DNA of 64,000 nucleotides, taken from assembly GCA_040285825.1 (NCBI GenBank), contig JAUPSS010000005.1, forward strand, positions 992,001 to 1,056,000. Direction: 5' to 3'. A program made the position numbers and the translations under genes. The notes under the pieces are model-generated. The model had not been told where the DNA came from, searched no databases, and worked only from the letters and a program-made list of their open reading frames with translations. Shown one piece after another: positions 339-64,000 of this stretch (the stretch's first letter is position 1; every line of letters starts with the position of its first letter). The DNA is from Eukaryota sp. TZLM1-RC (lineage: Eukaryota; Protista; Metamonada: BaSk clade).

Positions 339-2429
339 CTAGGTGTTGTTGTTGTTTAAGTCGAAGAACATAGATCTAACGAAGTCGTACTGATGAACAG
401 GTTGACCGTATTTGGTGATCGGCGTAAATGCTCTGGTGGGTCCATCGCGATCCCTAACTGTTTTAGCCCAATTGCCAAAGTTAAGAACGAAGTCGAAGAT
501 CTTCTTGGCGTCAAACGCTTCATTTAACTTAACTAGGCATCTCAGTTTGTCGTCTATTCTTTTCCTCAATTTCTCCTCGTCTGTTACAGGAGTTCTATAA
601 AGACCGAGGGTGTCGACGAGAGAATCTCTAGGAGCATTCGTTCCTAGGGGTTGCGTGGGTATAGATGATTTTATAACAGATGCTTGTGTAGGAGTTGCTT
701 CACAAGAAGCTCTCCTAGATGCCAGAGGCCCTACAGAAGGTGTACTATATAGGTTCATATTCCTCTCTTCTGAAGGCAATGTTTCGCCCAACTTTATGAT
801 AAATCTTGTCTTAGGAGGTTCCTCCTGCACAGGTACAGTCTGGGCTGGTGGTCTTAAATCCACCCAATCTGGTGCATCTTTAGATCCTCTAGGGACCCCT
901 GCTAGTTTATGATCATATGGAAGGCAACTGCTCTTTATTAAGACATTCTCAAAAACATTTTGGTCGGGCCAGCTATCAACCCATGCCTTAAGTTTAGCCA
1001 TCCATGCATCAGGGTATACTAGTTTTAACTTGTTGGGGCCAACACATTGCTCTTTCAATTCAATTACCCTCGTGCCTATTTCTCTAATATAGGACTCTTT
1101 GGTATGAAATTGAAGGGTGTCACCTCGAGATTCATCGAATCTGCCCCCAAGCATAATAAGAATGTCCGCAATGGAATCTTTTGGGTGTACATTCTCCACT
1201 AGGAAATGCCTTACGACGCCTCTAAGGTTTCTACCTTGTTGATTATGAGGATACATTTTAGCTATCCAAAATAGTCTGTCGTAAGCTTCTTGATTTCCAC
1301 TGAAATATATTTTGTGGTCATCAATTGCATCCCTATGCCATTTGGCAGGCCTGGGAGTAGCAGCTTGATACTTTGAACGAGGTGCGCTAAAATAGCAATC
1401 CTCGACTGCACTCATTCCACACGAGACTGCCGAATCGGTAAGATCATCCAATCTCTTTAAAAGATTTGGACTTTGATCATAACTCTCGTAGACGACGTCG
1501 TCAAGTGTTTTGCCGTGGGCTTCCCCAAAGAGGAAGGGCCAACGTTTCGCTAAATAGTCACGTCGCACCTTCTCACATTCGGCTGGGTCTACGTCTCCCG
1601 CAAAACGCTCTGACTCATTCTCAGCCATTTTTAATAATTCGTCATCACTCCAATCCAGTATATCTTCGGGAGGATTGGCGATGAGGTCCAATAAGAAATC
1701 TCTAGTTACAGCCTCAACTGCCTTTGCTAATTTCCTGCGGTAAAGACCCTGAGAAGTCCTTTCCGTAGATGGGAAACTAGGAGTTGGATTAGGAGAATTG
1801 GGTGTATGAGGTGGTTCATCATCGCTCTCATCCCCTCTCCTGCTGTAGTTCTGATTAAGAGATCCTCTGGAATCACTTTGAGGTTCCTCACTTGAGCTGA
1901 TGTCAGAAGTAGGTGAGGAGGGAGTTTTACGTGAGGAGCCAGTCGTAGACTGTTGCTCGCCTTCACCTCCTTCACCTTCTGTACAAGCGTCAGATTTGGT
2001 ACTTACAACAAACGCTTTGAATCTCCGTTGCTCGCTCGGAGTGAGAAAACTCTTCCTACAAGGAAGGAGCTCCGAGGAGTTGTCGGGGTATGTGTATAGT
2101 TCTGACACATCAACAACGTGGTTACCTCTCTCCGTATAAGGGAGGTGACTTCTTTTCTGGGAGGTGGGGCTCTCCTCAGTGCGAAGTTCACTCTCCTTAT
2201 TGAGGAGGTGGCTTTCTTTCTGAGAGGCAATGCTCTTCTCAGCGGAAAGCTCACTCTCCTTTGGAGGATTACTCTTCCCGAAGGAAGGACTACTCTCCGC
2301 AAGTGGAGGATTACTCACCGAGGACGGTGGACTGTTCTCCTTCAAAGAAGGGACATTACTCTTCCTCAGAGAGGAAGGAGGGTTATCATTGTGGCTATTC
2401 AAGCCATTAATTAATGATGCTCTATCCAT
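339..2429 (-). CDS. Gag-like protein of element A1 (Ser/Pro-rich N-terminus; ATG inside the LTR; C-terminus truncated)
   Basis: 696-aa ORF directly downstream of the LTR start. It shares blocks with A2 (KRWPFLFG, WIAKMYPH, RHFLVEN, KLKAWVDS, KSSCLPY). Confidence 0.75.
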   Translation of the reverse strand: MDRASLINGLNSHNDNPPSSLRKSNVPSLKENSPPSSVSNPPLAESSPSFGKSNPPKESELSAEKSIASQKESHLLNKESELRTEESPTSQKRSHLPYTERGNHVVDVSELYTYPDNSSELLPCRKSFLTPSEQRRFKAFVVSTKSDACTEGEGGEGEQQSTTGSSRKTPSSPTSDISSSEEPQSDSRGSLNQNYSRRGDESDDEPPHTPNSPNPTPSFPSTERTSQGLYRRKLAKAVEAVTRDFLLDLIANPPEDILDWSDDELLKMAENESERFAGDVDPAECEKVRRDYLAKRWPFLFGEAHGKTLDDVVYESYDQSPNLLKRLDDLTDSAVSCGMSAVEDCYFSAPRSKYQAATPRPAKWHRDAIDDHKIYFSGNQEAYDRLFWIAKMYPHNQQGRNLRGVVRHFLVENVHPKDSIADILIMLGGRFDESRGDTLQFHTKESYIREIGTRVIELKEQCVGPNKLKLVYPDAWMAKLKAWVDSWPDQNVFENVLIKSSCLPYDHKLAGVPRGSKDAPDWVDLRPPAQTVPVQEEPPKTRFIIKLGETLPSEERNMNLYSTPSVGPLASRRASCEATPTQASVIKSSIPTQPLGTNAPRDSLVDTLGLYRTPVTDEEKLRKRIDDKLRCLVKLNEAFDAKKIFDFVLNFGNWAKTVRDRDGPTRAFTPITKYGQPVHQYDFVRSMFFDLNNNNT
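2405..2416. other. 12-nt palindrome CATTAATTAATG at the 5' LTR end / PBS position (A1)
   Basis: Read directly; its CA is the terminal CA of the LTR. Confidence 0.9.
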
Positions 2430-3341
2430 ATGATAACAAGAATAAGGAATAATTTATTAGAATTTCACCGGCCCTTATAAAGGCCATCACTAGTGAACTA
2501 TGTTATATAAATATAAATGTACTAGACTAATTGTCCACAGTACAACATTGCAGTGGTCCATTGGTGATCATTAAGTCAAATCACCAATCAAATTACCCCT
2601 CATTGATATCATGTCCATTTCAAGTGGTATAAGTTATTCTTTTGCCCTTTCTGCTGATGGACAGTTGGTTGGTTGGGGTTACAATGAATTTAATGAAATC
2701 TCGATGTCAGAAGAATGGTTCTTACCAATTATTTTCTTAGAAATTCCGCATGGTATCAAGAAGTTTATAGTGGTCGTGATTCTTCATTTGCTTTGACCCA
2801 AGAAGGTAAAGTTGTTAAATGGGGACACATGGGTTCTTTTGAATTAATTAAAGAATTAAATAATATTGTTTTAATTTCTGTGTATGGGGATTCTTTCGTA
2901 GCAGTAAATGAAAATGGTGAATTCTTTTACTTAAACAGCTCTAACGAATATTGTCCATGTGTTTCAGAGATAGCAGTAACGAACCACCTATCGCCAAAAG
3001 AGCCATTCTGTGATTCTTTTGTATTAATTGGTGATTGCCTATTCGTTATTGACATTTATGGTGATCTTTGGCAGTTCAACAAGGGAGGTAATGATGCTTT
3101 TAATGATGAAGCTACTACTGTTGTAGGTCTAACTAGTATTGTTTCCATTGGTGGTTGTGAGAGTAATTACGCTGCCATTGACAATAATGGTTAAGTGTTT
3201 GTGTGGGGTTGTTTGGGTAATTTGAGCAATGGCTATGAAGTTAGCGAACTACCAAGATGTATTGTGTTGGCGCCCTAAGGCTTATATAATATGAATAGAA
3301 AATAAATCAGACTTTTCTTTACTACAATAGACTTTAGGCAA

Positions 3342-3353
3342 CAATAATTATTG
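3342..3353. other. 12-nt palindrome CAATAATTATTG at the 5' LTR end / PBS position (B1)
   Basis: Read directly; the LTR end is fixed by comparison with the 3' LTR and TSD. Confidence 0.95.
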
Positions 3354-3420
3354 GCCATTTTAAAGTCAAAAGGTATACCATAACTTCAGTATTAGTGAAC
3401 ATCTTCAGACACTTTATAGC

Positions 3421-5506
3421 ATGTCAGACATCTTCCAACAACATATTTGTGACTCTAATCCACCACTTAATATGCAGCAGGTACCAGCGTCACATACACA
3501 TGATATAGAGGGTAACGAGGCAACGGACCCGGATCCCACCTCCCCCTCCCTTAAAGTGAAAGATGAAAGAGTGGACGAGGTCCCTCCATCTTCAATAACA
3601 GAAGAGGTAACGAGAACGGACCGGGCTCCCTCTCCCCTCAAAGCAATGGAAGAGGCAACGAGAACGGACCCGGCTCCCTCTCCCCTCCCAATTCTAGAAC
3701 CTGTCTCAAAGCGAACGGATGGAGATCCCACCTTAGACACGTCTTCCCCATTAGGAGAATATGAAGAAATTCAATCTCAACTGGATGAAATGGAGGGAGA
3801 AGACGACTCTTCTGAGGGGTTCTACAAGTTATTAAGAGAGAATGCGGAGGCTTACCTCGAACCAACAGATTTCTGTCTGTTCGAGCAGCTTCCCCCTTTA
3901 TGGAGTCACATTCAAAAAAGAGGCAGAAACGTTGGTTTTCAGACCCTCGGAATGATTGGGGATACCCAAAAGGTATTGGAAATTCCCCTCAATGAAAGGA
4001 ATGAACTCATAAAGGCACTCGATAAACTGAGTAGAGAGACATTCGGGCGTAACGCAGAGCGCCGTCCCAGAATCTCCGGAATGGACAAGAGAATCAATGA
4101 ATTGATGTCTCTTCCCATCAAAGATAGATTGGATTGGAAGGCCTCCTTCCCAGATCAATACGGCAGGAGAATAAGGTTTCTCTCCATCGAGCAGAGAAGT
4201 AGGACCGACTCGGAAGGCATCCTACAATCCAAATTGCCTGCCTGGTTTGATCCTAACTTTGATACGGTAAGCCATAATTACACGGAGCTGACAGAGGGTG
4301 CTCCCACATATTTTACGGAATTTATGGAGCAGGAGGATAGTAGTGAACAAGACAAGCTTGAACCAGTAACACCCTGGTTTGATGCAGACGCTTTAAATAA
4401 CATTCATACGGAACGATCAGCTGTATCCACGTATAGGAGCCGTCCTAACAACTACATCCAACAACATGGTAACTCGTTCACAAAACAACGAGAGTTTAGA
4501 CAATGGGTAACGGGAGATCCATCCACATCTCTCCACCTTCCCAAACTGCCTGTTGTAGCCCCTATAATTTCTGAAAAAAGCCAACCAATACAGGTCTGCT
4601 CTATTGACAGCATACCCGAACACGTTCCAACAGTGAACGTCCCGGAACCTGTAACTAGACAAGACGTTGCTCCTCAGGAAGAACCAACTTCCTCCCAACC
4701 TATGGAACGTGAAATCGGAGAAGACATAGAGTTGAACAGGCCAGTCGTTGGAGAAACGGCTCCTCCTCAACCCTCAATAAGAAACTCTTCTTCCACAGAT
4801 CTATGCGTATTGAGGACCTACAATCCTCAAGAAGAGCTATTGACATGAGCATAGCTAGTAGCCTTCATAGACAGATTGATCCACGGTCTAAGGATATCGA
4901 CTATAAAAGACCTCGATTATCCGCTGATGACCGTATCAACAAAATGTCTATCATAGCTTTTCTTTTAAAATATCAAACTTGGGATAAATACGGGCGAAAG
5001 ATAGCTAATAGAAGCTTTGAAGCCCCAGGTCAATCAGATTGGACCAGAGCCTTTATGATAGCTACCCAGCTATTTGGAGAAGGCCAAGCAGAAATCACCC
5101 AAGATAAGATTAAAGATCGATCTCCCCAAACATATACGCGACGAGATCACCAGGGATACAACTCAGCCTTTGGTAAGGATTGACCCAGCTATAACAGATA
5201 AGCTCGGACCCCCAATCCACCATTATGATTTATTTAGGAGCATGATGAATGAGCACTTGCCCTACAGGAATATCCAGCATGATTGACCCTAGCCTGCTAT
5301 CCAGATGGCAAAGTCAAGGTTTACTCGGTGTTGATTATACCGGCGCCGACGTCATGGTATTTCTGTTAAAAAGAACACAATTCACATCATATCATGAGGC
5401 CTGTACAGCTCTAATGAAGCCTAGAATAAACTGGAGAAAAATCCACAACAGATTAATTCTACGGTTAGTGAAAACCACATCAGGTCCCAGTGTTCTCCAT
5501 TTCTAA
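3421..5506 (+). pseudogene. gag of B1 (frameshifted; C-terminal part apparently deleted)
   Basis: Consecutive ORF pieces 3421-4848, 4803-5183, 5074-5286 and 5249-5506. Paralogous to 18335-19751. Confidence 0.7.
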
Positions 5507-8500
5507 GACTGGAGATATCAATAAATGATATTAAAATGATTGCGACTATAGATTCGGCTGCGTTTTGTTCAGTTATTACTGCAGATTTAGCTGAACAATG
5601 CCATATGTCAATCAATAGCAAGGATACTGTTAAGTTCTTACCAGCTAATAATGTATCCACAAAATCGCTACGAAGTGCAACTGGTATTCTGTCGTTCAAC
5701 GTAGGAAGCATTGTGCAACATGTTCATTATAAACATACTCTTCCCATAATTCCGGGTTCGAACAAATTATTAATAGGGACAGACATGTGAAAAGCACTTG
5801 GGCTTCAGACGGATGATGGTCTTTTCATTAGATTAGACAAAGAACACCGCACTTTGCTAAATGCAGAATCAGAATTCGACTCTAGGATCGCTCAACATTC
5901 GATTGGGAACTTAGATAACCAATCACCAAGTCCTTCTGATTTTGAGGAGCAATTAGCAAGATCTGGATGTGAGATAAACTTAGATGATAGTAATAATAAA
6001 TTAAAATTAACGAGTCTACTAAAATTATTCAGCGATGTTTTTAGTGAAACTCCTAATAGAAAAGGAATCGATTGTAATCCTCTAACAATCCCCTTTAGAG
6101 ATGAGAATGCTATAGTACACAAGCCTGCTAGACGATTAAATCCCAGCAAAATGGAAATAGCAAACAAAATATTTGATGAACTGATCGAAATGGGTTATGC
6201 AGTTGAATCTAATTATAAATTCAGCTCTCCTATTGTCTTAGTTATATATCCTGACGGCAAGAAACCCAGGTTAACTGGAGACTTTAGTGGTAAAGATGGA
6301 GTTAATGCCCATACGATTTCAGTAGAGCCTAATCTACCTAGGATTAGTGATATTTTAGAATTTTTGAGTAGAGCAAATTACATCGCCACGCTTGATTTAC
6401 CAAAAGCTTTCTGGCAGATGAATGTAGCTGATAAGGATATTGAGAAAACATCAATCTCAATTCCTGGAAGGTCAATCATGTTTAAAAGAGCTTGCTTCGG
6501 ATTAAAGAACATCCCAGCAGTTTTTCAAAACGTAATGATGGAAATTTTCCAAATAGACGGCGTTTTTATATACATTGACGATATCATAATAGTTGGAACG
6601 ACATTCGAAGAATTTTATAAGAGATTACAAAGAGTCCTCCAATGCGCCAGAAATAGACGCGTAAATATAGGCTTACGTAAATGTAAATTCGTAACATCAA
6701 AACACCCTATCGACATTTTAGGAAGTACCTTCCAGGATAAAACTAGATTTATTAGTAAGAAAAAAATCGAAGCCTTGATGAGAATCCCTAGACCAAAAAC
6801 AGTGAAAAAAGTTCGCTCATTGGTAGGATCCATCAATTATATTAGAGATTGGCTTCCAGGTATTTCTGAATTAATTGCTCCAATTAACGAGCTAATTAAA
6901 GGAAAACCCAGAATAATTAAATGGACTAGCAAGCATGACGATTACCTAAAACAAATAAAAGACTTAATAGTAAACCACATGCCCCTTGAATTACCAGCTC
7001 CGGGCAAGCGAGTATTGATAAGTACTGACGCTTCAGATGTAGCAGTAGGAGGTGTTATTTGGCAAGAAATTGAACCCTACTCCCTGCAGGAACCCCGCTA
7101 AATAAAAGGAAAGTAAAACCTTTGTCATTCTATAGTAGATTACTTACAGAAACACAAAGAAAATGGTCCACATTACAAAAAGAATTATATGCAATACTTT
7201 TGATTTTAACTGAAAGTTGTTTAGAAAGCTACTTGTTAACTAGACATTTAACATTTTTCACAGATCATAAAAACATTGCATTCCTGGCTACAGCCCCAGA
7301 GAAAAATAGAATTGTAAAGAGATGGCTGCCGATACTATCTGAATTCGACTTTGACATAGTCCACGAACCTGGTGAAGACAACCATTGGGCAGATATGTTA
7401 TCGAGGAATATTGATTTGGAACAAAACGAGGAACACTCCTTCTATTTGTAGCATAAATATACCAGATACTTTACTTTCAAATTACGAGATACCTCCACTA
7501 GACGATGATTCTGATTCGAATCTTGAAGACATCCCATCAATCTCATCTCTAAGTAGACACCAAGACCTACCTATTTTTTCTTCTTGGTTCTCTAAGATAA
7601 GATCCGAACAACAAATAGCCAAAAACAACAACGACTCGTTATTTGAAAATGTAATTCTAGATGAAAATACTCAAATTTGGAAAAATAATAAAAACAAAAT
7701 TTTGATTCCAAAGAGCCTCAGAAAACAGGCACTACTATTAATACATGGCTTGGTTCAATCTGGTCACCCCAGTAAAAACGATAGTTTACACCAACTATCC
7801 AAAAGCGATTTTTACTGGCCCAATATGAGAAAGGACCTCATTAATCATGTCAAAAGATGCCCAACTTGTCAAAAAACGGCTCCAGTTAAAAGATCAAAAA
7901 CACCTTCCAAAGGATCTTTATGGGCAGATCGTCCTTTTGCCAGATTAAACGTCGATACAATTGGACCCCTAAATTCTGACAACGAAGGAAATAAATATCT
8001 TTTAGTATTTGTAGACTCTTTCACTGGATATACAATTTTAGTCCCTCTAAAAGAACTCAATGCCTTAGAAACCGCTGATGCCTTAATTTGGAATGTTTGT
8101 GCTATCTTTGGCATACCTATGTTAATTCATAGTGATAATGGACCTGAGTTCGCCAACGAGACTTTTAAAATAGTGTGTAACAGATAGCGATTGAGACGAG
8201 TAACTCAATTCCCCACTATTCAGAAAGTAATGGACTTGTAGAACGTAAACATAGAGACGTTCTTCAATGCTTAAGGAAACTATTAATAGATTTCAACGAT
8301 TACGGAAATTGGTCTACATACGTACCTATATCCCAACTATTAATAAATTCTACTAAAAGCAGAAAAACTGGTTTTACTCCATACGAACTCATGTTCGGTT
8401 CTTCGATTAGCCCAAGAACAGACCCTGCTAATATATTAGGAAATTTATCCAAATTTGAAACTAATATCCCCTTTATTAGAAGACATCAAAATGAAAAACA

Positions 8501-9069
8501 CTCCTCTACAAGAAAAAAGGGAAGAAGCAGAGCGTCACCAAACATTAAATACTTCGTTTTCAGTAGATAATACTAATTCGTGTTTTTTAGCATTTAATAT
8601 TGGTGACTACGTCTTACGTAAAACCAAGCAAAATAATAAATTGCATGGATCTTGGAATGGACCATTCTTAGTTATTGACCTTCCATCCAAATCTACTTTA
8701 TTATTGAAGAATCTTACTACTGGCACAGAATTAAAAGCTGCCAAGAAAGATTGCAAAATCTATGAAAATCCACAGGACATTGAGTTCCTCAAAGCAGTCG
8801 CTGCAGGCGATTCCGAAAAACACGTTATAGAGAAAATCCTCTCAGAATACCACTCTGATTCAGGTAGTTTCTGTACTGTTCAATGGTTTGGCGGTGAGAC
8901 AACAGAAGAGCCACTCCATTCGGTTAGACACTCAGAAGCTTATAAGTTATTTAGTAAGGATAACAAGAAAATTGGAAAACGTACCATTAGTCGACGACAA
9001 GGTACTTCCAATGAGTCTATTCCTTCTAAGAAGCCTAGACGCAGCAATAGAATTAGGAAGAGGAGCTAA
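5490..9069 (+). pseudogene. pol of B1: protease, RT, RNase H, integrase, chromodomain-like tail (frameshifts/stops)
   Basis: ATIDSAA (degenerate aspartic protease), LDLPKAFWQ, YIDD, TDASD, H..CPTC, DTIGP, SDNGPEF, VIEKIL...CTVQWFG. Confidence 0.9.
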
Positions 9070-11039
9070 TTCTTAGTTTATATCGATTATATGTATTTAT
9101 TTATAGTTATTTCGTTATTTGTATATAGTTTTTATTTCATATTCATATAAGCTGATCTATTTTGAAAAAGGGAAGAAGCAGTGTTGGCGCCCTAAGGCTT
9201 ATATGTTATGATGAGAAAATAAATCAGACTTTTCTTTACTACAATAGACTTTAGGCAACAATTGAAGCTTTAACTAATATGGAAGGTATTTCAGTAGGTG
9301 ATGACTTCCTTTTTGCCTACAACAAAAACACTGTTTGGGGTTAGGGAAGGAACGATAAAGGTCAATTAGGTACGTGTGATTTGATTTATCGACCACAACC
9401 TGTCAAAATCTTTGGATCTGAAATACTTGGCAGTTTTCAATATCCCAACCAACCTATGAATAGAATGTTTAGTGGTCTAATTAAGCTTGTTTATTGGGAA
9501 TATTTAAGTTATTTACAAAAGCTCTTTGGTAATCATCCATATATTAAAGCAAGATTTCACTCCAAATGTGGAGTAAGTAAAAGGGTAGCTCAATTTGCTC
9601 AAAAATTGATTAATGTTCATCCAATTCAAAATAAGTTGTTTATAAAAGATCCTCAAAATTTCAATTTAAATGAAAATATTTGTGATTTACAATTGCGATT
9701 ATCTACTAATTATTATGGACCCAAAGTAATTAATACTAGATTTAAAGAACTTGATGTTTACTATGATTGGGTTGATTATGATCCACAATTATTGACATTG
9801 TTTCCAAATGTTGAGCTTGTTAAGCTTGGTGGAGACTTAATTCCTCTTCATCATCTTTGGCCTCGGCGTATTTATCTAATTTCAAATGTCTAGAGCTTAA
9901 TCATCCATTCAGAATTCAACAATTACCCAGTTCACTAGTGAAGTTAGTGCTTAAACATGAATGAATTGAAGTTGATGATTTTAGTTACCTTACATCACTA
10001 AAAGCGTTGGTGGTTTTAGGTGTTGACTCTTATCAAGATTCTGTTTTCAAACAAATATCAGAATGACAAATACATTTGCCTCAATCAGTGGTCAGATTGG
10101 AAGAATCATTGAGTGAACTTGTGAATGTTCAAATACAATTCCCAAACTTGAAGGAATAGTTTACCATAAGGTTGTTACCAATTTCACTGAACAAAACTTT
10201 CCTTATTTGAAATTCATTCAATTTGTTAGATTTTCAGAACGAATTCAGCCTCCCCTATCTTTTAGAGAACTAATTAATCAAGGTATGGTAAAGTCTGTTA
10301 AACGAATCAAGAATGAATATTTAAGTGAATTATCTTTTTTTCCATGGTGGGTTCAGCGATCAGCTTAACGCCAGTGTATTGAGTCTATATGATTTTGTAG
10401 ATGAACAAGCACTACTGATGTAGAAATTAATAAAATTATTGGTGTTTGCTTCTTTAGCATTTCTTATTAGTTTTCTCGTTATAAATAATTGTTTTTGATG
10501 TTTATTTTTTCAAAAAAATGTATAAGATATATTTCAATTGTCTCTTCTTGAACGCTTCTAGACGGAGATGATTTATTGATTTATAGAAATAATTGTGTTT
10601 TTTCTCTTTGTATGAATTAAATCAATTCTCCACTCATTATTCAGATTTCTGTCCGAATATTGGTAACCAAAAAATGTAAAGTTGGGGCAATATTTCAGGT
10701 TTAAATTGTTTGAAAACTAAAAATCAGAAATCAGTAATCTACGTTTTTCAATAATTTATTAATTCAGAAATGATTACTTGATGTTTTGCATTGTATGTCA
10801 GCTAATGTTACCTGTTGTAACACACAAACAACTAACATGAAATGAGAAGAAAAATGCATTTGTTCCATATTTGTTGTTGTGAATTTTCTCTCCCTTTACC
10901 ATTTAAATAAATAACAGCTGTGAGTAATTATGTTGCAATACATATTTTGGTTAAAAAAAAGAAAAAATAAAAAAAAACAGCAGACCGTTACATTAATTAA
11001 ATCATTGTAGATAGTCATTTTGGCTTTTACGAGTCGAGT

Positions 11040-11510: not shown

Positions 11511-11773
11511 CAGCTTTTTAATTTATTCCACTGAGAAACTAAACCACAGATTCTAAATTCTAAATCTTCATATCCCAAATCAGCCAAAAAGTATTGACTG
11601 GAATTTTTTCTTCATAAAAACGACCAAAAGATAATAAATCAGAAGATGATAAGGGGACGACACCTTTTTTGGACGGTTTCATGAAAAAAATTGCAGTTGT
11701 CATAAGTTTGATATAAAGCTTTTTGAAATATATCAAAATCTCTTCTCCTCTTACTTAATACTTGTTTACCACA

Positions 11774-12469
11774 ATGTCTGATTCTGAACCTGAGGCTGTT
11801 GACGTTGGCACTTATGAAGGCGAACGCAATGAAGATGGAGCTCGCCATGGTCAAGGAAAATGTGAATATGCAAATGGGGACAAGTATGAAGGTACTTATG
11901 ACTCTGGCGTCCGCTCTGGGGAAGGTACATACATATGGCAACATCCCGAACACAGCTTCTACTATCAAGGCAACTACGACCAAGGCATCCGCAATGGAGA
12001 GGGCAAACTAAACCTCCCTGATGGCTCTTCTTACTCTGGACAATGGAAGGACGGTCTACCTCACGGTGAAGGTACTTTCACCTACGCAAACGGAGATACC
12101 TACACTGGCCAAGTGGAGAAAGGCCAACGTGAAGGTGAGGGATCGTACAAGTTTGCCTTAACTGAAGAAGTTCTCTCTGGTACATGGGAAGAAGGTCAAA
12201 TTTCAGAAGGAAGTCGCCAGATTTCTCCAAAAGTCAAGTGGGTAGGTCAGTTTTTGAATGGTCAACCAATGGGCAAAGGTTACTTTGAATTTATACATCT
12301 AGGTTATCGCCAATACGGTAAATACGTGCTACTCTCGGCTCTCGAACCTGAGAATGATGAGCAGGATAACGAAAGTGACAATGAGGAGGATGAAGATCAA
12401 CTCAACAGTACTTTAAAGATGAAAACGCCTGATGTGAAGTTTGTTCCTGGAAGGATAGCAAAGATTTAG
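11774..12469 (+). CDS. MORN-repeat protein, radial spoke head 1 (RSPH1)-like
   Basis: Tandem MORN repeats (YEGERNEDGARHGQGKCEYANGDKYEG...) and an acidic tail. ATG at 11774, TAG at 12469; intact. Confidence 0.85.
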   Translation: MSDSEPEAVDVGTYEGERNEDGARHGQGKCEYANGDKYEGTYDSGVRSGEGTYIWQHPEHSFYYQGNYDQGIRNGEGKLNLPDGSSYSGQWKDGLPHGEGTFTYANGDTYTGQVEKGQREGEGSYKFALTEEVLSGTWEEGQISEGSRQISPKVKWVGQFLNGQPMGKGYFEFIHLGYRQYGKYVLLSALEPENDEQDNESDNEEDEDQLNSTLKMKTPDVKFVPGRIAKI

Positions 12470-36709: not shown

Positions 36710-37005
36710 AACAGAATTTTTTGCTGATTTATTAGATGTTGGCAACATGCTGAAAAATCAGTTATTTTCGGCAGCAAATTTGGGTGGTATTGGATTTACA
36801 AAATCTTCTATTTTCTGTCAATTAGCATTTTTTGGTGGATGCAAGATTTTTATTTATGAATTTTCTCATTTGTTAGTTCCCAGTTACAGTCTATATTTGA
36901 ATGAGTTATCTTGTAAACTCAATAGATTGTCACCACAAATTTGGACCAAATGTTTTCCCCAATCAATTCAAAAAATTACAAACCGATCTCTCGATAATTT
37001 GCAGT
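36710..37005 (+). mobile_element. Internal fragment of a CRE-like non-LTR element
   Basis: Colinear with 16097-16413 (FSAANLGGIG...QIWTKCFPQSIQ). Confidence 0.85.
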
Positions 37006-49577: not shown

Positions 49578-51543
49578 CTAGCATCTTTTAAAGGGTTTTA
49601 GTGTTGCCACAATTGTTTTTAATCGCTGTTCGAGGGGTATTGCGTCGTTGGGGTTATTGGAAAGGTCAGTCCAGATTGCACCACCTACACCAACGTCGGA
49701 GGCATCGGTGGTGATCACAATCTGCTGGTTGTCCTCAGGTAGAGTTAGGGGTACGGCGTTCTTAATTGCTGTTTTTATTTGCTGAATATTGCGCTCTTCC
49801 ACTGGTGAAATTTTGAAATTCTGTCCTTTTTGGAGCAATTTGTATAAGGGAACAGATAGAGAAGCATGATTGGGAATAAAATCTCTTACGTAGTTTGCAG
49901 ATCCCAGAAAAGCACGTAACTGTTTTTGGGATTTGGGAAAAGGGAGTGAAGTAATAGCTGATGCTCTAGAAGGGGAGATATGTCGTTTGCCATCACGAAA
50001 GTCGCTTCCAAGTATGGTAATTGAGTGAGAGTCGTCGGAGATTACAGTCTTGGGACCAGAAAGCCGAGCCCTAATATTCCGAACCCTGGCAAGGGTGCGG
50101 TCTAGGTTGGTCAACAAATCTTCAAAAGTTCCAGCTAACACGATGAGATCATCAATATAAATGTCAGAGTAGGGGGTCTTGAACACTGCGTTCATTCGAT
50201 CCTGGAAGTATCCAGGCACGTTTTTCAAACCGAATGCAGCCCGTGAATACTGAATGGCCATTCCAGGTATCCCAATGGTGGTTTTTGCTTGATCTTTTTT
50301 GGCAATGTTCAGCTGATGGAAAGCACGCTTCAGATCAAACGTGGCAATGAACTTGGCTTTGCTGATCTTGGCGAATATGTGTTCGGCACGAGGTATGACA
50401 GCTTCAAAAGTCTTACTCAGTTCATTGACCTTGGTATAGTCTCCACAAAGCTTTGGTCCACGGTGTTCATATTCTTTGTGTACGATGGGGCTCATGTATT
50501 CCGAATCTAGTGAAACTTCTTTAGCCACTCTTAATTCGATGAATTCATTCATAAGTTCCTTGGCGATAGCAAGGCGTCGAGGGTTGAGGCTTCTTGGGTT
50601 AAGTTTAACACATTTTGATTCGTCATCAAAAGACATTTCCATTGATGGTACATCTAAACCATCGGGATGAGGTCTAGGGTTGAAGACATCATTGAATTTT
50701 ATAATGACGTCTTTGACAGCAGGTGCGTGTCTATTATCAGATAGTTGATAGCAAATTTCGGTGGTGTAAATTGGGTCGTTGTGAGCATTCTTGGGTGCAT
50801 TTTTTTTAAGTCCTTTCGTGAAGTATTACTGACAAATGGTCTTCTCATGGTTGGCTTGTAACTCTCAAATCTTTCGAAGGCTGCACATTCGTCGACCGTC
50901 TCTTGTACCAGTGATAGAAAGTCATTGATGGTGCCGGCTCTGATTCGACTGGCAAAATCTTTGGCGATGGACTTTGGTCTAATCTGTTCGGCAAACTTGA
51001 GTAGCCACCATTGTTCATCCAGGTTTAAGTGAGAAGCTCGTTTCCTAAGCTTCTGAAACTCCATCCCGAAAGTGAGGTAGCGGGCTTCGGTGTCTTTCTC
51101 GGCGTTGTTGGGTGCAAGTTCGGTCAGGGCGGCTTGTAATGATCGAAATGATCGAAATGGGAGGCGAGTTTCAAAAAAACTTTCTAGTTCGGCATCAGCG
51201 TCTGCTTTCTCAGCAAGTTCATTATCTGGGTTGGCATCTGGTTTATGGAGATAGATCCCCTCTAGTATGGAAGAAGGGATTCCATCACAAAGTTTCCAGC
51301 CTGGCATTGTCTTCTTGGCCATTTCTATAGCGTCTTGATAGGTCAATAGTGCCTTGACACTAAGGTTAGTGAGGATTGGCATGACAGTGTTCGGGGGTTG
51401 GGCCATGATTCTGGGGTACTAAATGCTTCAGTGATCACTGTTTCTAGTTCACGTGAAAAGAGGATAAGATACTTTATTATACTAGCACCTAACATTTCAG
51501 TAAGTGCCACGTCATTATGAATTAAAACTAAATCTAGATTACA
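49578..51543 (-). mobile_element. Divergent LTR element G: putative 5' LTR 51439-51543, gag 51406-50699, RT-RNase H 50700-49578; protease and 3' part missing
   Basis: TGTAATC...GAAACA. FDLKRAFHQ, FGLKN, YIDD, LRAFLG, TTDASD. Confidence 0.85.
51429..51440. other. 12-nt palindrome CAGTGATCACTG at the inferred 5' LTR end (G)
   Basis: Read directly, about 23 nt upstream of the gag ATG; followed by A, so there is no TGG. Confidence 0.8.
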
Positions 51544-55172: not shown

Positions 55173-57980
55173 TGATGCTGTAGGTTGGAAAAGTGGGGTT
55201 AGATAAAGTTGATTTATTTTCTATTCATATTATAGAAGCCTAAAGACGCCAACACTGCTTCTCCCCTTTTGAAAATCAATTGGTTTTATATGAATATTCA
55301 ACTTATAATCAATAATTAATAAACTAAAACTAATTCCTATTTCTACTGCTACGCCTAGGCCGTTTAGAGGCGCTAGACTCGTTGGAAGGACCTCTTTTAT
55401 TAGAAGTACGTTTACCAACTTTTCTAATTCTCTTGTCTTTACTCAATAACTTATAAGCTTCTGAATGTTTAACTGAATGGAGAGGCTCATCTGTTGTCTC
55501 ACCGCCAAACCATTGAACAGTACAGAAACTACCTGAGTCAGAGTTATACTCTGAGAGGATTTTCTCTATAACATGTTTCTCAGCATCGCCTGCTGCGACT
55601 GTCTTAAGAAATTCGATATCCTGTGGATTTTCAGCGTTATAGATTTTGCAATCTTTCTTAGCAGCCTTTAATTGGGTGCCAGTGGTAAGATTCTTTAGTA
55701 ATAAAATAGAGTTGGAAGGATGATCTATTACTAAGAATGGTCCGTTCCAAGATTCATGCAATTTATTATGTTGTTTGGTTTTACGAAGGACATGGTCACC
55801 AATATTAAATACTATAAAACGCGAACTAGCATTATCTACTGAAGTTGGAGTATTCACTGTTTGGTGATGCTCTGCTTCTTCCCTTTTTTCTTGCACAACG
55901 AATATTTTTCAATTTAATATCATCTATTAAAGGAATATTGGAATCGAATTTTGATATGTTTCCTAATATATTTGCAGGGTCCGATCTTGGGCTAATCGAA
56001 GATCCAAAAATAAGTTCGTATGGCGTAAAACCTGTTTTTCTGTTTTTAGTAGAATTTATTAATGATTGGGATATGGGTACATAAGTAGACCAATTTCCAT
56101 AATCATTAAAATCTATTAATAATTTCCTCAAGCACTGCAAAACGTCTCTATGTTTACGTTCTACATGTCTATTACTTTCAGAGTAGTGGGGCATTGAGTT
56201 ACTCGTCTCAATTGCTAATCTGTTACGCACTATCTTGAAAGTCTCAGTGGCGAACTCAGGACCATTATCACTGTGAATTAACATAGGTATGCCAAAAATT
56301 GCGCAAACGTTCCAAATTGATGCGTCTTTGGTCTCTAAGGCATTGAGTTTCTTTAGAGGGACTAAAATTGAATAACCAGTAAATGAATCTAAAAATACTA
56401 TCAAGTATTTATTACCATCGCTATCAGTATTCAAAGGTCCAATTGTATCGACATTTATTCTAGCAAAAGGACGATCCGCCCAAAGGGAACCTGTGGAAGG
56501 TGTTTTTGTTCGTTTGACTGGTGCCGTTTTTTGACAAGTTGGGCATCTTTTGACATGTTTTATGAGGTTCTTTCTCATATTAGGCCAGTAGAAGTCGCTT
56601 TTAGAAAATTTTTGTAGACTGTCGTTTTTGCTTGGGTGGCCAGATTGAATCAATCCATGTGTTAATAACAAAGCCTGTTTTCTGAAACTTTTTGGGACCA
56701 GAATTTTTTTTATTATTTTTTCAAATTTGAGTATTTTCATCAAAAATTGCGTTTTCAAATAAGGAGTCCTTATTGTTTATGACAATCTGTTGTGCTGATC
56801 TAATCTTAGAGTACCAAGAAGAAATAATGGGTAAATCTTGGTGTCTGCTAAGTGACGTTATTAATGTGAGATCTTCAGAATCCGAATCTGAGTCGTCAAT
56901 TAGAGGAGGTATTTCATAATTTGAGTACATTGTGTTTGGTATATTTATACTGCAAATTGATGAAGGTTCTTCCTCCTGATTTAGGTCGATTTCTCGATAA
57001 CATATCTGCCCAGTGGTCATCTTCACCAGGTCCATGGACTATGTCAAAGTCGAATTCAGACAGTATCGGCAACCATCTCTTTACAATCCTATTTTTCTCT
57101 GGCGCAGTTGCCAGGAATGCAATGTTTTTATGATCAGTGAAAATTGTTAGATGTCTAGTCAAAAGATAATTCTCTAAGCAACTTTCAGTTAGAATTAAAC
57201 GTATTGCATATTTGTAAAGTGGACCATTTCCTTTGAGTTAGATCTGGGTTATGGTTAGGAATTAGTTCTGTCACATCTACTGTTGGGATGTGATCAGGGA
57301 GTACATCAATGGAACAGACTTGTACCGGTTGCTCTTTCTCTGATATTATGGGGGCAATTACTGGAAGCTTAGGTCTCTGGTGGAGCTCCGTTGATCGGTC
57401 GCCCGTAACCATGAATCTGAACTTCTTCTTCCTTGTTGTAGACATAAAATTGTTGGGACGGTTCTTCGTAATCTTTCAGGACAGACGAAGTTTTTGAACT
57501 TGACCCATTATTTGTATTTTTAGGTGAAGAGGGGGGTGGTCCCGTTCCTGAAACCTTTTGTGGCTTGTTGGACTTGGAAGAGGCGGGATGTGGTTCCGAG
57601 CCTGGTTCCATTATTTCGGACTTGAAAGAGGCGGGCGGTGGTTCCGTGCCTGAATCCATGGGTTTAATTTGAGGAGGGGCGGAGGGTGGTCTCGAGCCTG
57701 AGTCCTCAACAATATTCATCATTATTACATCTCCTGTTGACATGTGTATGCTGAAAGCATCCCTGTCGTGTTCCTGCATGTTAATTTTAAGGAAGTCAGT
57801 GCTCTGGTTGGAAGGAACTGACATGATATCTTCTAAAGATATCCTCTGTCAAAAAGCTGTGTGTTGTCAAAGTGGTATACCTATTAACCTAAATGGCCAA
57901 TAATTATTGATGCCGTAGGTCGGAAAAGTGGGGTTAGATAAAGCTGATTTATTTTCTATTCATATTATAAAAACCTAAGG
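55173..57980 (-). mobile_element. LTR element F (B-related), internally deleted; LTRs 55173-55254 and 57908-~57980; probable TSD GAAA
   Basis: 82-bp direct repeats, with the outer ~9 bp of the 5' LTR missing. PPT GAAAAGGGGAGAAGCAG. gag start (57824) is joined to RNase H at ~57240. Integrase and chromodomain-like tail present. Confidence 0.9.
57898..57909. other. 12-nt palindrome CAATAATTATTG at the 5' LTR end / PBS position (F)
   Basis: Read directly; the boundary is fixed by the 3' LTR. Confidence 0.93.
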
Positions 57981-59479
57981 AAACATAGAAAAAAAATTAT
58001 TGACCAAAAACTCTCTCGTAGATTGGCTGTTTCTTCTAACAACAAAGAGTGGCGTTTAATCAGGAGCTCAAAAGAATGACCAGATCATCTGAATATTTAC
58101 GTGTTCCTAGCAGCTTGAGGATGTTTTGCCTCAGTCATTTGGCGTCAGAATCAGAAACAGCTGAACAGTCATTGGAAAATGTTTCTTGGCCTGGAATTTG
58201 TTTCAATACAATTGGAACAATGGAGATTTAATTATTGTTTATGTTACAATTGCAGTTTCAGGGAGGTAATAAACACTTCAGAGCTTTTATGTTTATTAGT
58301 GCCAAATGACACATCACACTATATTAATGTATATATTGAGACATTAAATGGAATTCCGTATACTGTGCATTCGGCATTTGAAATCTTGTTAATGGGTACT
58401 TTGCTTTCAGTTACTGGATTTTTGTAGCGGCTATCGAGCATGCATGTTAGTACGTACAGCATTGTAACCGATTTTTTGGACAAACGGAGCTGCTAGACAA
58501 TTGCTTTGAGCATCTTCCAAAATTACTTCTAATGGTGCGCAATAATATAGCACATTCACAAAAAAGCTACCGACAGCTGTTTCTTCGGCTTTCTGTATCC
58601 CATTATAAATAGATGTATCTAATGATTTCTTTCTTTTTAAACGACTAACGTTTGAAGTAAAAGGGAGCTGTTTCTTTGCAGAGGGCGATAAGACGTTAGA
58701 ATGAGTCTTTTTTCCCGATTTCAAGTCTTTTAAGTAAGCCTTGTTTAATCCTATCCAATTTAAGCTACAAATTGGGACATTTTGTACGACAATTCAGACA
58801 CTGTAAGTTTAAAAGGTTCAATGGGTCGCTCCAATGGAAATCTTCTCAAAAGGTCGAGATGGGGGGGGGGGGATCAGTAGAAGAGTGAAGAAGAAGAAGA
58901 AGGTAGATCAAAATTTTCATCAACAGGAACTGATGATTTTGCATAAAAGTGTACCAAAAGGCTGAACTTCATTGCAACAAAGAGAAAATAGAACGCAATA
59001 CAGATTTTAATGCATTTGTTAAATTTAAGTAAAAAATATAACCAAAAGGACCTGAAATAAATAAAAGAGTTGCAACAGAAGTCCTGTTAATTGATTTGAA
59101 TTCAAATTGTTAAGGAAACAAGATCTTTTCCTTTGTTAAAATGCTGTTGAAAACCAAAGAAGCATGAATTCTCACAAATTAGTCTCCAATTGCAATTGGT
59201 CGAACATTTGATGTATTTTGTTGAGGGTAATTAATCGATAACTGGTCATCGCATAAGGCACTTTATTTTTTAGGGTTAAAATGTTATGGGGCATTGACAA
59301 AACAAGTCCACCTGAGTTTTTCATTTTGCAGATTTGGGTCCATCCATAAACGCTTTTGCAAAATTGGGCCCTTGTTCTCATTCTCACTGGTGTTATCTTC
59401 TCCATCACTGTCCTATTGTTCTCCTTTTAATAAACTTTGTCACTTCTGTCACTGATTCTGATAGTCTCTATCAATGCTA

Positions 59480-60157
59480 AACATACACTTTTATTATGAA
59501 CATGAACATTTATACATATCGAAAACTCAACCTCAATACTGTAACAGCTCATCCAATGGAGACAATCCAGATACATGGATGTCAAAGTTCAGTGCTTCCA
59601 TCGTCTCCTCTTCCTGATAATGCAGCTCTTGCTCTCCTCCATCTAGATCAGCGTCTTCTTCACAACAATCGAACTCACCCTTAAGTATTGCATCAAGCTC
59701 CTCTTCATCTAACCGTTGTCTCTTCGCAGTCTTTCTTGATTGTCTACGAAATCGTTTCTTCCGTCTTCTACCAACTCTCTTTGTATAAACAGGAGGAAGA
59801 ACTGTTTCCATTCCATCATCAATTTCCCAATCGTCTCTTTCTTGATTGTCTACGAAATCGTTTCTTCCGTCTTCTACCAACTCTCTTTGTATAAACAGGA
59901 GGAAGAACTGTTTCCATTCCATCATCAATTTCCCAATCGTCTCTACCTCTCATTGGTCTTAATCCGATGGTAAATGTGTTAACAAGGCTTTCCATCTTAA
60001 AGTAGCAACTGATATATTCTAAAGGAGATTTTTTCTTCAAAACACAAGCGGCAACGAGGTGACAACAAAGATATCCACAATATTTCGTTTCACCACATGT
60101 ACAGGTGCCGTCTTTCAAGTCTACAACGAACACTTTCTCAACTTCAATGCTCTCCTG
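59480..60157 (-). mobile_element. 3' part of a MULE transposase (SWIM finger, basic tail) with a 106-bp tandem duplication (59730-59941)
   Basis: VDLKDGTCTCGETKYCGYLCCHLVAAC = SWIM CxC..CxH; LPPVYTKRVGRRRKKR. Confidence 0.8.
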
Positions 60158-60290
60158 TGTTGTACTGTGGACAATTAGTCTAGTACATCTGTATTTATAT
60201 AGTATAGTTCACTAGTGCTGGCCTTTATAAGGGCCGGTGAAATTCTAATAAATTACCCTTATTCTTTGTTATCATACATGGATGAAGCAC

Positions 60291-60302
60291 CATTAATTAA
60301 TG
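60291..60302. other. 12-nt palindrome CATTAATTAATG at the 5' LTR end / PBS position (A2)
   Basis: Read directly; it extends to 14 nt (CCATTAATTAATGG). Confidence 0.95.
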
Positions 60303-61559
60303 GCCCGAAAAGCCACAATGATAACCCTCCTTCCTCTCTGAGGAAGAGTAATGTCCCTTCTTTGAAGGAGAACAATCCACCACCACCCACGGTGAGTAAA
60401 CCTCCCTTGACGGAGAGTAGCCCTTCCCTCGGGGAGAGAGCGTCCCCTCAAAATGAGAGTAACCATGGGAACCTTTTCCCCGGGTACGACCCCAATAACA
60501 TGCTTCCTAATGGAGCAAAGCTCGTACCGGGTAAAGGAACCAACACTGAGCTTTTTGTCAAGCCAGTTGATGGGGAAGGCACGGGTTCCTCGAATCCAAT
60601 CCCTCCTCCTTCTGATACTGGTAAACCTAAAGAAGAAGATCAGCCTGTTACTACAGTTACATCTCAGCAGGGCAAGGACGACCCTAACGACGGTGACGGT
60701 GACGGGAATGGTGATGAACCACCCAGACGCCCATCCTCCTCTCCAGATTGGACAGATACGGAATACCGCACCTCTCAAAAGTGGTACCGTAAACAATTAA
60801 GAGAGAAGGTAACCCTTGTCGTTCAGGAGTTCCTCCTAAATATTCGAGCCAATCCACCCGATGATAATAGGGATTGGAGTGATGACGAATTCGTCAAGGC
60901 CATTGAGACAGAGGCAAATATTCTCTCGGACCCCAGTTACGTAGGTGACAGGGACGAATTTCTAAAGAAAAGATGGCCCTTCCTCTTTGGTAGCTCGCGT
61001 GGTTATACCATGGACGATGTAGTTCACCAAGAACAAGATCAAAGCCCGGATATGTCAACTAGGCTACATCAATGTTCTGAGAGTGCAGTCCAATTTGCAG
61101 GAGATCCTGAGAATTGTTACTTCAACAACCCACGTTCGAAATACCAGGCTGCTGCTCCAAAACCACAGTGTTGGCACAGAGATGCCATTCCTGATCAACG
61201 GATCCGTGCTAGGAATCATTATTCCGGAGGCAACGAGTTGGAAAATGATCGGATGTTATGGATTGCCAAAATGTACCCTCATCACCATGCAGGCCGTATG
61301 ATGAGAGGAACAGTAAGACACTTCCTTGTTGAAAACATTCATCCAAGTGATAGAATTACAGATGGGTTAATGCTAATAGGTAGTATGTTCGTTGCTGATC
61401 GCGGAGATACAATTCAATTTCACCGCAAGGAAACCTTTGTGAGAACAAAGGGAACCAAGATCATCGAATTAATTGAACAACGAGTAAGACCTAATAAGAT
61501 AAAACTGGTTTATCCAGATCCTTGGATAGTTAAGCTCAAAGCTTGGGTTGACAGCTACC

Positions 61560-62220
61560 TAGAGACCCTTCGCACCTCACGTAAAGCAGTTTTGGTTTCC
61601 CCTTTGATAAATAATTGTTGAGCTTTTATCAGCTTAACTCCACATTTAATCAAATTTTGACTTAATTTAAGATCTGAATCAATAATTGAATTAGTTTTTT
61701 GACTCAACGGACTGGAAATAATGAGATCAACAATGGAATTGGTATTTAATTGACCAAACGATCCATTATTTTCAAAAATATCAGCAAATATCGGGACAAA
61801 TTCAGCAAATTTAGAATCCGAAAAGGAAAAATAATACATATTTTCCATAAATAGCTTGTAACAATTGTAGTCCCAAGGGGTGTTTTTAATTGATTTTTGA
61901 ATGGCTCTAATCCGGAATTTAGATTCAGTTTGCGCCAATAGAAACTCGACAACCAAAAATTTCGAATAATCACTTGATGACAAATTTTGACTTTTTGGCT
62001 TGTAAAATATTTGCCGAGCTACATCAATAAGATGTTGTTCCACCAAAAGAATGCCACAACAAAGTCTAACAAAGGGATCAAATGGAAACCTGTGCAAAAA
62101 TTTAAGAACATTGCGTTGAAAATTTGGCAACTTTTGAGTAGCAACTAAGCCCAGCCTCAAAAGTTCAAAATTTACAGTTGTCAAATGATTTTGACAAATC
62201 ATCAATGAGCTCTTTTCAAT
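61560..62220 (-). other. 661-bp foreign, host-gene-like open fragment (helical/TPR-like) inserted antisense in gag of A2
   Basis: Removal restores TAC C/CA AAT (DSYPNQRVFEN, compare A1 DSWPDQNVFEN). The minus strand is stop-free across the insert. Confidence 0.8.
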
Positions 62221-63659
62221 CAAATCAGAGAGTTTTTGAAAACATCCTGGTCAAAAGTAGTTGCCTCCCTTATAAACATCATGTGGATGGAGTCCCTCAA
62301 GGTTCTAAAGATGCTCCAGATTGGGCCACTTTTAAACCTGATAATCAGAAGTTGCCTGAGCAGGATGATCAACCCAAACATCGCCAAATCCTAGACTTGA
62401 GCGAGATGCTACCATCTGAAGAAGCAAATCAATTGTTATTCTCGACTCCTTCAGTAGCACCGTATCTAGGAAGAAGACTATCATCTGCACAAGCTTCTGG
62501 ACAGAGTACTCCTGTTCCTCCCACTATTCCCTTGGTAGCTAGTAGTCCTTCAACTAACATACCAAGAGATCCTTTAGTTCTTTCCTCTGGTGTATACATC
62601 AAACCATTCACTGATGAAGAAAAGCTCATCAAGAAAATAGAAGAAAGGAAAAGACAACTAAAGAAACTGGATGATGGTTTTGATTCCAAGAAAATTTTCG
62701 AAGTCTAAGAAAGATTTTGGTGGACTCTGGCGATTATAGCAATTGGAGTGAATATATCCCAATTGTACAACTTCAAATCAATTCAACTATTAGTAGAGTT
62801 ACTGGTCATTCGCCCTACAAATTAATGTTTGGTAGCGACCACAGCCCTAGCGCTGATCCTAGTAATATGTTTGAACTAATTAAATCAGCTAATGTTAATA
62901 TTCCCTTTGTTAAAGATCTTGAAGCAAAACTTGAAAGGATTTCAAAGAAGAGAGAAGAGGCAGAGCTCAGGCAAGCTCAACAACTGCCTGAAGTTAACAA
63001 ACATAGGAACCCTTTTGATAAAGGTGACTTAGTTTTGCGATTAAAAACTAATGGTAAACTCCATGGTTGCTTCGCTGGCCCTTTTCTCATTGAAGAAGTA
63101 AAATCCAATAAAAGCTTATTGCTCCAGAACTTAGTCACTGGTTCGTTATCTACAGCTAGTATAAATCATTGTAAACTATACCTTTCAGACTTCCCTAAAG
63201 AAGATCTTGATTGGGATAAGAATATTGCTGCTGGCGATATGGAAGAATCTGTAATCGTTAAAATTATAGATCACTTTGATTACGTAGATTCGAACAATAA
63301 TAAAGTTCCTTATTGCACTGCAGTTTGGTCTGGCGGCGAGACTTCGTCTGTCCCAGTTGCTGACGTCAAAAGCACTGAGGCATATCAAACATATTTGCGC
63401 TCTATTAGTCCTCGCACTACCAGGAAACGGAAGGCATCTTCTAATTCCAAATCTAAGACTAATTCCCCCGCAGTCAGTACTCGTAGCTCTCGTTCGAGAT
63501 CTAAGAGAGGGAAAAGGTAGTGTTGTACTGTGGACAATTAGTCTAGTACATTTGTACTTATATAGTATAGTTCACTAGTGATAGCCTTTATAAGGGCTGG
63601 TAAAATTCTAATAAATTACCCTTATTCTTTGTTATCATATATGGATAAAGCATCACCTG

Positions 63660-64000
63660 TGTAGGCTTATGCCAATATAGGTTATAGTTATATTTGTGTA
63701 TTAGTAGTTACAGTATCACGTGATGCCACGTCATCACTTATTTATCTAGACTCTTGTTCAAATTCTCCTGATTATTCCCACCTTTCTAATAAACACCCCG
63801 TTTTCCTGTATATTACCTCGATGCATCTCCATACTAACCCAACAGTAATTACTGTGGCCCAAACGAGTAATCCTGGCCGAGTTGCCCCAATTCTCCGAAG
63901 TGCTGACCGCTCCTCTTGCTCGCGCTTCGTTGACGAGTTGCGAGACTTTGCCGTCCGTATGTCCTTAATGAGACCTGAACCCGCTCCCACTAATTCCCAG
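63660..64000 (+). mobile_element. LTR element D2: putative 5' LTR 63660-63844 and gag start (ATG 63821); runs off the window
   Basis: TGTAGGCTTATGCC...; MHLHTNPTVITVAQTSNPGRVAPILRSADR matches D1. Confidence 0.85.
63843..63854. other. 12-nt palindrome CAGTAATTACTG at the inferred 5' LTR end (D2)
   Basis: Read directly; it extends to ACAGTAATTACTGT. Confidence 0.8.

Follow-up and report, generated by a model that had tools for sequence, protein, structure and literature searches.

A covarying palindrome at the primer-binding position of Skoliomonas Ty3/gypsy retrotransposons: a candidate site for priming between two genomic RNAs

The Ty3/gypsy retrotransposons described here, from a 64 kb window of the genome of the metamonad flagellate Skoliomonas litria strain TZLM1-RC (the window being the whole stretch of DNA analysed, 38% G+C) and from related loci, carry a 12-nt palindrome where a primer-binding site would be expected. 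The palindrome lies in a fixed register across the end of the 5' long terminal repeat (LTR), keeps its symmetry through covarying changes, has no other complement nearby and is followed by nothing that is conserved. From these genomic sequences we see about an even chance that a self-primed, tRNA-independent clade of Ty3/gypsy elements uses it as its primer-binding site, through the pairing of two genomic RNAs. Primer acquisition is a defining replication step of LTR retroelements, and the established solutions are a host tRNA, whole or partial, and the Tf1-type fold-back of the element's own 5' end. A primer site that a whole clade in three genomes maintains as symmetry only would point to a third solution, namely pairing between two genomes.

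Position and register at the 5' LTR end

The window holds ten 5' ends of LTR retrotransposons, which belong to two complete elements (B1 and C), two internally deleted elements that have kept both LTRs (F and A2) and six truncated elements (A1, B2, D1, D2, E and G). They are of the Ty3/gypsy (Metaviridae) order, as the original prediction had assumed, an assignment that rests on the domain order reverse transcriptase (RT), RNase H, integrase. In the Pol protein of C, Pfam identifies RVT_1 (184-303), RT_RNaseH (396-509), the integrase zinc finger Integrase_H2C2 (635-693) and the integrase core rve (709-804), and the order RT, RNase H, integrase is also found in relatives of C. The LTRs are compact, at about 71-185 nt, start with TGTT and end in CA (TA in the related family L005); 4-bp target duplications are readable in 12 elements from the window and its relatives, and a purine run ending in CAG or TAG precedes the 3' LTR.

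The LTR end is the start point of minus-strand DNA synthesis. The palindrome overlaps the 5' LTR end in all two-LTR elements and so occupies the position of a primer-binding site, as had been proposed. In A2, B1, C and F this end is fixed by the second LTR, the repeat stopping after CA: only bases 1 and 2 of the palindrome belong to the LTR, and the remainder is missing after the 3' LTR, where the target duplication comes next. The complete element B1 (3265-9260, plus strand) has 79-nt LTRs at 3265-3343 and 9182-9260, the latter preceded by a polypurine tract, with the palindrome CAATAATTATTG at 3342-3353, and the intact element C (25346-31588, minus strand) has LTRs at 25346-25500 and 31434-31588 that are 98% identical, with CAATACGTATTG at 31424-31435 flanked by GATC-AT and GATC. 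The internally deleted F (55173-57980, minus strand) has LTRs at about 55173-55243 and at 57908-57980 and carries CAATAATTATTG at 57898-57909. The deletion derivative A2 (60158-63655, plus strand), which codes for gag and the integrase C-terminus and has no RT, has LTRs at 60158-60292 and 63521-63655 and CATTAATTAATG at 60291-60302. Clean 4-bp target duplications flank A2 (CCTG), B1 (ATTG) and C (AAAG); in F the start of the 5' LTR is damaged. From the LTR end to the dyad there are 4 nt in every two-LTR element, and 5 nt in the related family L008.

All ten of the 12-mers reported for the window are present, nine of them perfect and that of B2 altered by C1 to A. D1 and D2 share identical 185-nt LTR limits, D1 on the minus strand (CAGTAATTACTG at 20455-20466, LTR 20465-20649, gag fragment 19721-20530) and D2 on the plus strand (CAGTAATTACTG at 63843-63854, LTR 63660-63844), where the element extends past the window. 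For E (CAATAATTATTG at 47586-47597, plus strand, with RNase H and integrase remnants downstream at 48332-49559) and G (CAGTGATCACTG at 51429-51440, minus strand, with gag at 50699-51406 and RT at 49578-50642, both minus) the LTR end is placed by orientation and by the open reading frames (ORFs) behind it. A1 carries CATTAATTAATG at 2405-2416 beside a 5' LTR at 2415-2547, both on the minus strand, and the truncated B2 carries the decayed AAATAATTATTG, mutated at position 1, at 18250-18261 on the plus strand, behind a B-type LTR that begins near 18174.

Palindromes of the form CA-N8-TG number 10 in the window, where 200 first-order Markov simulations gave 1.4 +/- 1.1 and never more than 6, and nine of the ten stand at 5' LTR ends. 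Around the tenth, CAATTGCAATTG at 59187-59198, neither an LTR nor gag or pol can be recognised; with 1.4 such sites expected it may have arisen by chance, or it may be what is left of a decayed solo copy. With the ten LTR-end sites set aside, the window contains 30 perfect 12-nt palindromes against about 18 expected under a first-order Markov model.

Of 17 junctions, 10 have the palindrome within translated sequence, in one of two frames, and 7 have it outside. Coding constraint is ruled out as the cause of its conservation, the palindrome being kept in both frames and when untranslated. The gag ATG lies within the 5' LTR, 13-44 nt before its end, in C (31434-31457), A1 (2415-2429, the gag ORF at 339-2429 on the minus strand starting 13 nt upstream of the palindrome) and A2 (60278-60292), and likewise in L001, L003, L004 and L006. 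The 5' leader must therefore be very short, with U5 and the palindrome translated. In the 3' LTR this ATG starts a short reading frame that runs out into the flanking DNA.

Relatives and sequence variants

Relatives were sought by protein search with the C Pol sequence. Matches above 36% identity occur only in three Skoliomonas-group assemblies (GCA_040285825.1, GCA_040285805.1 and GCA_040285855.1), and all others are ordinary gypsy proteins at 25-31% identity. Ten loci taken from the three genomes yielded 13 further 5' junctions, for a total of 23 with the window; these 23 junctions, which make up the sample, are mutually related. The expected symmetry was borne out, with a perfect 12-mer in the common register at 20 of the 23 junctions. 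In the most distant family, L008 (36% identity), the 12-mer is also perfect but shifted by one base, starting at the A of CA, and B2 and L009b, both old copies, each have a single mismatch at the outermost pair. The palindrome begins at the first base of the LTR terminal dinucleotide in 22 of 23 cases, this being CA except for TA in L005 and the mutated C of B2.

The perfect variants number ten, comprising the five in the window, CAATGATCATTG, CAGTACGTACTG, CAATTATAATTG, TAATAATTATTA and the shifted AGTAACGTTACT, and a single genome hosts at least five of them together. In L005 the two LTRs are 100% identical and end in TA instead of CA, with a target duplication of AATG, and the palindrome ends in TA instead of TG; thus even the pair containing the end base recognised by integrase is compensated. 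A metagenome scan returned relatives at only 24-32% identity, and those with readable LTR pairs had no palindrome. The outgroup gypsy elements L011, L012 and L014, analysed with the script used for the Skoliomonas junctions, show canonical TGG primer sites.

Covariation and predicted folding

We scored the six core pairs in 22 aligned junctions against 500 shuffles. Paired cells make up 98.5% of the total, compared with 82% in shuffled sets and 18-58% when the partner was slid, and none of the 500 shuffles, which ignore phylogeny, reached the observed values. Pairs 1/12, 3/10, 5/8 and 6/7 change on both sides (four of the six pairs, 20 cells), and one-sided changes are absent. The compensatory changes originally described at 3/10, 5/8 and 6/7 are therefore two-sided only across the whole alignment, which supports the proposal that symmetry rather than sequence is conserved. 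Positions 2, 4, 9 and 11 are invariant. Position 3 (A or G) and the centres AATT, ACGT and GATC occur in all six combinations, with three further states besides, which calls for at least about eight independent double changes, or for recombination. An RT tree groups the Skoliomonas elements in a single Skoliomonas-only gypsy clade (support 100/100) across which the variants are scattered: the sister elements L001 and L004 differ at pair 3/10, and the sisters L002 and L005 at pairs 1/12 and 5/8.

A chance origin of the LTR-end palindromes is ruled out by the simulation count together with the shuffle test of pairing.

About two thirds of junctions have the potential for a further helix around the palindrome, formed by 3-4 bases on its upstream side and 3-4 on its downstream side; directly 5' of CA, 2 nt, as a rule A and one other base, would bulge out. 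This flanking helix reads GGC-AU-[palindrome]-GCC in B, E, F, L001 and L004, GAUC...GAUC in C and GUCA...UGAC in L006, and the GACC...GGUC of L003, a relative of C, is a compensated change. Its positions are paired in 71% of cases, against 52% in shuffled and 20-55% in slid controls, which is suggestive of a real helix without establishing one.

The behaviour of the central positions bears on whether the symmetry acts within one RNA or between two. An intramolecular hairpin, with a 4-bp stem and a 4-nt loop closed by the flanking helix, could serve as a structural signal recognised by the RT, similar to that of the fungal GalEa elements, for which a hairpin was proposed (PMC5445492). The monomer fold does give such a hairpin in most junctions, and the bulged flanking helix in roughly two thirds of them would fit it. 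The loop positions 5-8, however, need no self-complementarity, yet whenever one base of pair 5/8 or 6/7 changes its partner changes with it (3 and 5 of 22 sequences, respectively), and the adjacent positions 6 and 7 covary from AU to CG. Since covariation of these central pairs is useless to a hairpin, it favours a duplex between two molecules, as had been argued from the window. Predicted energies point the same way, with hairpins weak at -0.4 to -6.0 kcal/mol and homodimers at -12.8 to -27.9 kcal/mol, 12-16 kcal/mol more stable than two hairpins. A hairpin would also provide no extendable 3' end upstream of U5, and it has no downstream partner like CHSeq2, so that we regard it as rather improbable.

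The symmetry could instead belong to the DNA, as a two-fold symmetric site for a dimeric protein, either a host factor or an integrase for which the site mimics an LTR-LTR junction. Strictly Watson-Crick symmetry, with no G-U pairs, is what a DNA palindrome would show, and the invariance of positions 2, 4, 9 and 11 in a site that starts with CA and ends with TG would suit a protein. Against this, ten variants would demand co-evolution of the protein in each family, five of which share one cell, and the flanking helix covaries around a one-sided bulge, a feature of single-stranded folding. The junction-mimic version put forward at the outset finds no support, given that the right half and its flank are unlike the LTR start TGTT and that cuts at both CA sites would detach the 5' LTR. 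A DNA site of either kind appears quite improbable to us.

The search for other primer sites

No TGG adjoins the LTR in the Skoliomonas junctions, and conservation stops with the palindrome: from the first base beyond it, pairwise identity drops to the background level (0.23-0.41), which is also the level more than 5 bases upstream. The divergence reported downstream thus sets in immediately, and the sequence differs even within family A. The original claims about TGG stand for its absence beside the LTR and for D1 and G, which lack it after the palindrome; D2, in contrast, has TGG directly after the palindrome in the orientation of the element.

TGG formed by palindrome positions 11-12 and the next G would allow ordinary tRNA priming after an 8-nt spacer, and 15 of 23 junctions have it at positions 11-13; the outgroup L012, moreover, has a canonical TGG site 7 nt past its LTR. 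The remaining 8 junctions lack the motif, however, and the sequence behind it stays at background identity and varies inside family A. The candidate sites are AT-rich, variable and unlike acceptor stems, and spaced tRNA priming would leave the symmetry and the covariation unexplained. We therefore judge it highly improbable.

A second copy of the 12-mer was sought within 160 nt upstream and 150 nt downstream, where the best matches have 2-6 mismatches, the sole 2-mismatch match being that of F, outside its LTR. Over the whole LTR, the best match to a Tf1-type complement has at least 3 mismatches in every junction tested, in keeping with the claim that the LTRs hold no complement of the primer site. 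A second block of the GalEa type was looked for up to 150 nt downstream; the closest match there differs at 3-6 positions, and relatives do not share it. ARAGORN found no tRNA gene in the window and L001-L010 (about 250 kb), and no Rfam family reached its gathering score.

As judged from the junction sequences, a tRNA site shared by the elements is excluded by the background identity after the palindrome and the lack of TGG at the LTR. Tf1-type fold-back priming is excluded in that the LTR holds no complement of the 12-mer, and the GalEa-type hairpin in its details by the lack of a second complementary block downstream.

In L012, a metagenome outgroup, the canonical TGG tRNA site 7 nt after the LTR (7288-7312) is preceded by the AT-rich spacer TTAATAT, which with the following GG makes a 10-nt palindrome if G-U is allowed. 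This may be chance or a hint at the origin of palindromic sites.

A model of priming between two genomic RNAs

Because minus-strand synthesis starts at the LTR end, the primer must anneal just after CA; because the bases after CA differ between families in one cell, that primer must be encoded by the element. The palindrome is the only element sequence complementary to those bases, and its central positions covary, which argues for pairing between two molecules. In the model that we favour, two copies of the genomic RNA would pair through the 12-nt palindrome, and in many families the duplex would be extended by the flanking helix of 3-4 bp behind the 2-nt bulge. A cut in one strand, within the duplex or at its end and probably made by the RNase H of the element as in Tf1, would then create a 3' OH, to be extended on the intact partner through U5 and R as minus-strand strong-stop DNA. 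Were the cut to fall between positions 10 and 11, a point that mirrors the LTR end, the A and C of CA would be copied first and a blunt CA end would result; such a cut, two bases before the 3' end of the palindrome, would account for the LTR always stopping after the second palindrome base. The cut might alternatively fall after position 12, opposite the bulge, in which case two ribonucleotides must stay on the minus strand. With either cut, plus-strand strong-stop DNA would copy the primer, so that a mutation arising in one half would be carried over, in complementary form, to the other. Such primer copying would explain why only symmetric states separate the families while dead copies decay asymmetrically.

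Several points weigh against this model. The case is built wholly from genomic sequence, and the relatedness of those sequences makes the shuffle controls overstate significance. Core G-U pairs number zero, though an RNA helix should tolerate them; the proposed self-copying could explain their loss. About one junction in three (D1, G, L002, L007 and L009b) has a weak flanking helix or none. With a palindromic primer site, plus-strand strong-stop DNA should be able to fold back on itself, at some cost, and the roughly 250 kb searched yielded no host tRNA gene to compare with the site. Finally, covariation proves pairing, not priming, and the palindrome could be only a dimerisation or packaging signal, with priming left to something else.

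Retroviruses pair two genomic RNAs through such a signal, the dimer initiation site, an example being the 6-nt palindrome in a hairpin loop of human immunodeficiency virus type 1 (HIV-1). Retroviral sites of this kind are short palindromes, self-complementary sequences of the 5' leader whose subtype variants keep their symmetry (they are also discussed in PMC5445492), and the stability predicted for the Skoliomonas homodimers would suit the same role. The retroviral site, however, sits in a loop and is separate from, and additional to, the tRNA primer site, whereas the Skoliomonas palindrome lies at the primer position and overlaps the LTR end, with no other primer site found. A dimer signal would need neither the fixed register at the LTR end nor the inclusion of the terminal CA, and it would not call for the compensation of pair 1/12 seen in L005. 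Nor is there, behind the palindrome, any other conserved or complementary candidate from which priming could start. We consider a pure dimerisation signal unlikely.

Returning to priming between two genomic RNAs, the sequences also suggest, in a version that we rate a little below even, that the clade is obligatorily dimer-primed, a symmetric duplex across the U5 end being cleaved in one RNA to prime the other and the site repairing itself. Dimer-primed reverse transcription has, to our knowledge, not been described for any retroelement. If it operates here, dimerisation and priming would be linked in one 12-bp element, the retrotransposon would be freed from host tRNAs, and a built-in mechanism for concerted compensatory change would be expected: a self-repairing primer site would drift in sequence without ever losing its symmetry. 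The short LTRs, the intact young copies and the ten perfect natural variants leave this question open to experiment.

Relation to Tf1 and GalEa elements

One close comparison is with the Tf1-sushi elements Tf1 and Tj1, which, in the account given in PMC4600332, are likewise of the Ty3/gypsy order, do without a tRNA primer site and draw the primer from their own RNA through a duplex of about 11-12 bp at the primer position, as the model proposes for Skoliomonas. For Tf1 it is established that RNase H cleavage of an RNA duplex makes the self-primer (cited in PMC4600332). The Tf1 site is non-palindromic and pairs with the 5' end of the same mRNA, inside the LTR, whereas for the Skoliomonas site the LTR offers no complement; the site can pair only with its own sequence, for which a second RNA molecule is needed. 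Pfam detected no chromodomain in the Skoliomonas elements.

The original prediction knew of no described equivalent, and here it has to be corrected, as the GalEa Copia elements of fungi carry a similar palindrome (PMC5445492). They have no primer-binding site, and their palindrome, ACTGATCAGT or ACTAATTAGT, includes the final A of the 5' LTR (PMC5445492); Donnart et al. (2017) named it the Conserved Hairpin Site and could fit it to no known model (PMC5445492), and a later paper on bivalve terminal-repeat retrotransposons in miniature (TRIM) still leaves its mechanism without explanation (PMC6934838). Both groups have a palindrome at the primer position that takes in the terminal base or bases of the LTR, with GATC or AATT centres and paired substitutions (PMC5445492), and the palindrome of L008 starts at A, as in GalEa. 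GalEa elements differ in being Ty1/copia, with a 5-bp target duplication, a 10-nt palindrome that begins at the final A, and, 12-41 nt farther downstream, a second conserved block that is complementary to the first apart from a fixed A/A mismatch (PMC5445492). The Skoliomonas elements combine the gypsy order and a 4-bp duplication with a 12-nt palindrome that begins at C (except in L008) and have no downstream block. The Skoliomonas site is thus a second, independent case, new in its superfamily, its eukaryotic supergroup, its longer palindrome and its larger number of variants, as well as in the covariation of the LTR's own end base and the lack of a second block. If the model holds, dimer priming may also explain the fungal site as a convergent solution. 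The Skoliomonas genome paper does not mention LTR elements (PMC11316075).

Other features of the elements and the window

In element C, pol occupies 25485-28760 and gag 28788-31457, both on the minus strand. Its Gag protein (889 aa) has no Pfam match and no CCHC finger, whereas the L007 and L010 families carry zf-CCHC, and a tandem array of at least 5 units of 45 nt (15 codons) lies within the gag at 30507-30854. In L010 the 5' LTR measures about 172 nt (7859-8030) and the 3' LTR about 83 nt (15012-15094); the two are identical at both ends, with about 90 nt gone from inside the 3' copy. Elements in the window are tightly nested or adjoining: the CCTG target duplication of A2 directly adjoins the first base of the D2 LTR (63656-63660), and the start of the D1 LTR adjoins a pol fragment of a B/F-like element at 20650. 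A perfect tandem duplication with a 106-nt unit (59730-59941) lies just upstream of A2.

A second abundant retroelement encodes an RVT_1 RT followed by a 378-aa domain without a Pfam match, and is probably a non-LTR element resembling long interspersed nuclear elements (LINE-like). It is found at 15196-18062, at 24027-25325 with 31576-32090, at 36693-37004 and at 40893-42967, as well as in L002 and L004-L010, and the nearest Atlas clusters to its 378-aa domain are arthropod post-RT regions, some with zf-RVT. C is inserted within one copy of this LINE-like element and the L010 element within a tandem array of such copies, which could reflect an insertion preference or mere abundance.

Host genes lie between the elements. 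They encode a MORN-repeat protein (11762-12469, plus strand), a TCP-1/cpn60 chaperonin fragment (12944-13624, minus strand), a class I Glu/Gln tRNA synthetase in two ORFs, split probably by an intron (38018-39686, plus strand), and a protein kinase with LRR_6 repeats (44109-45833, minus strand).

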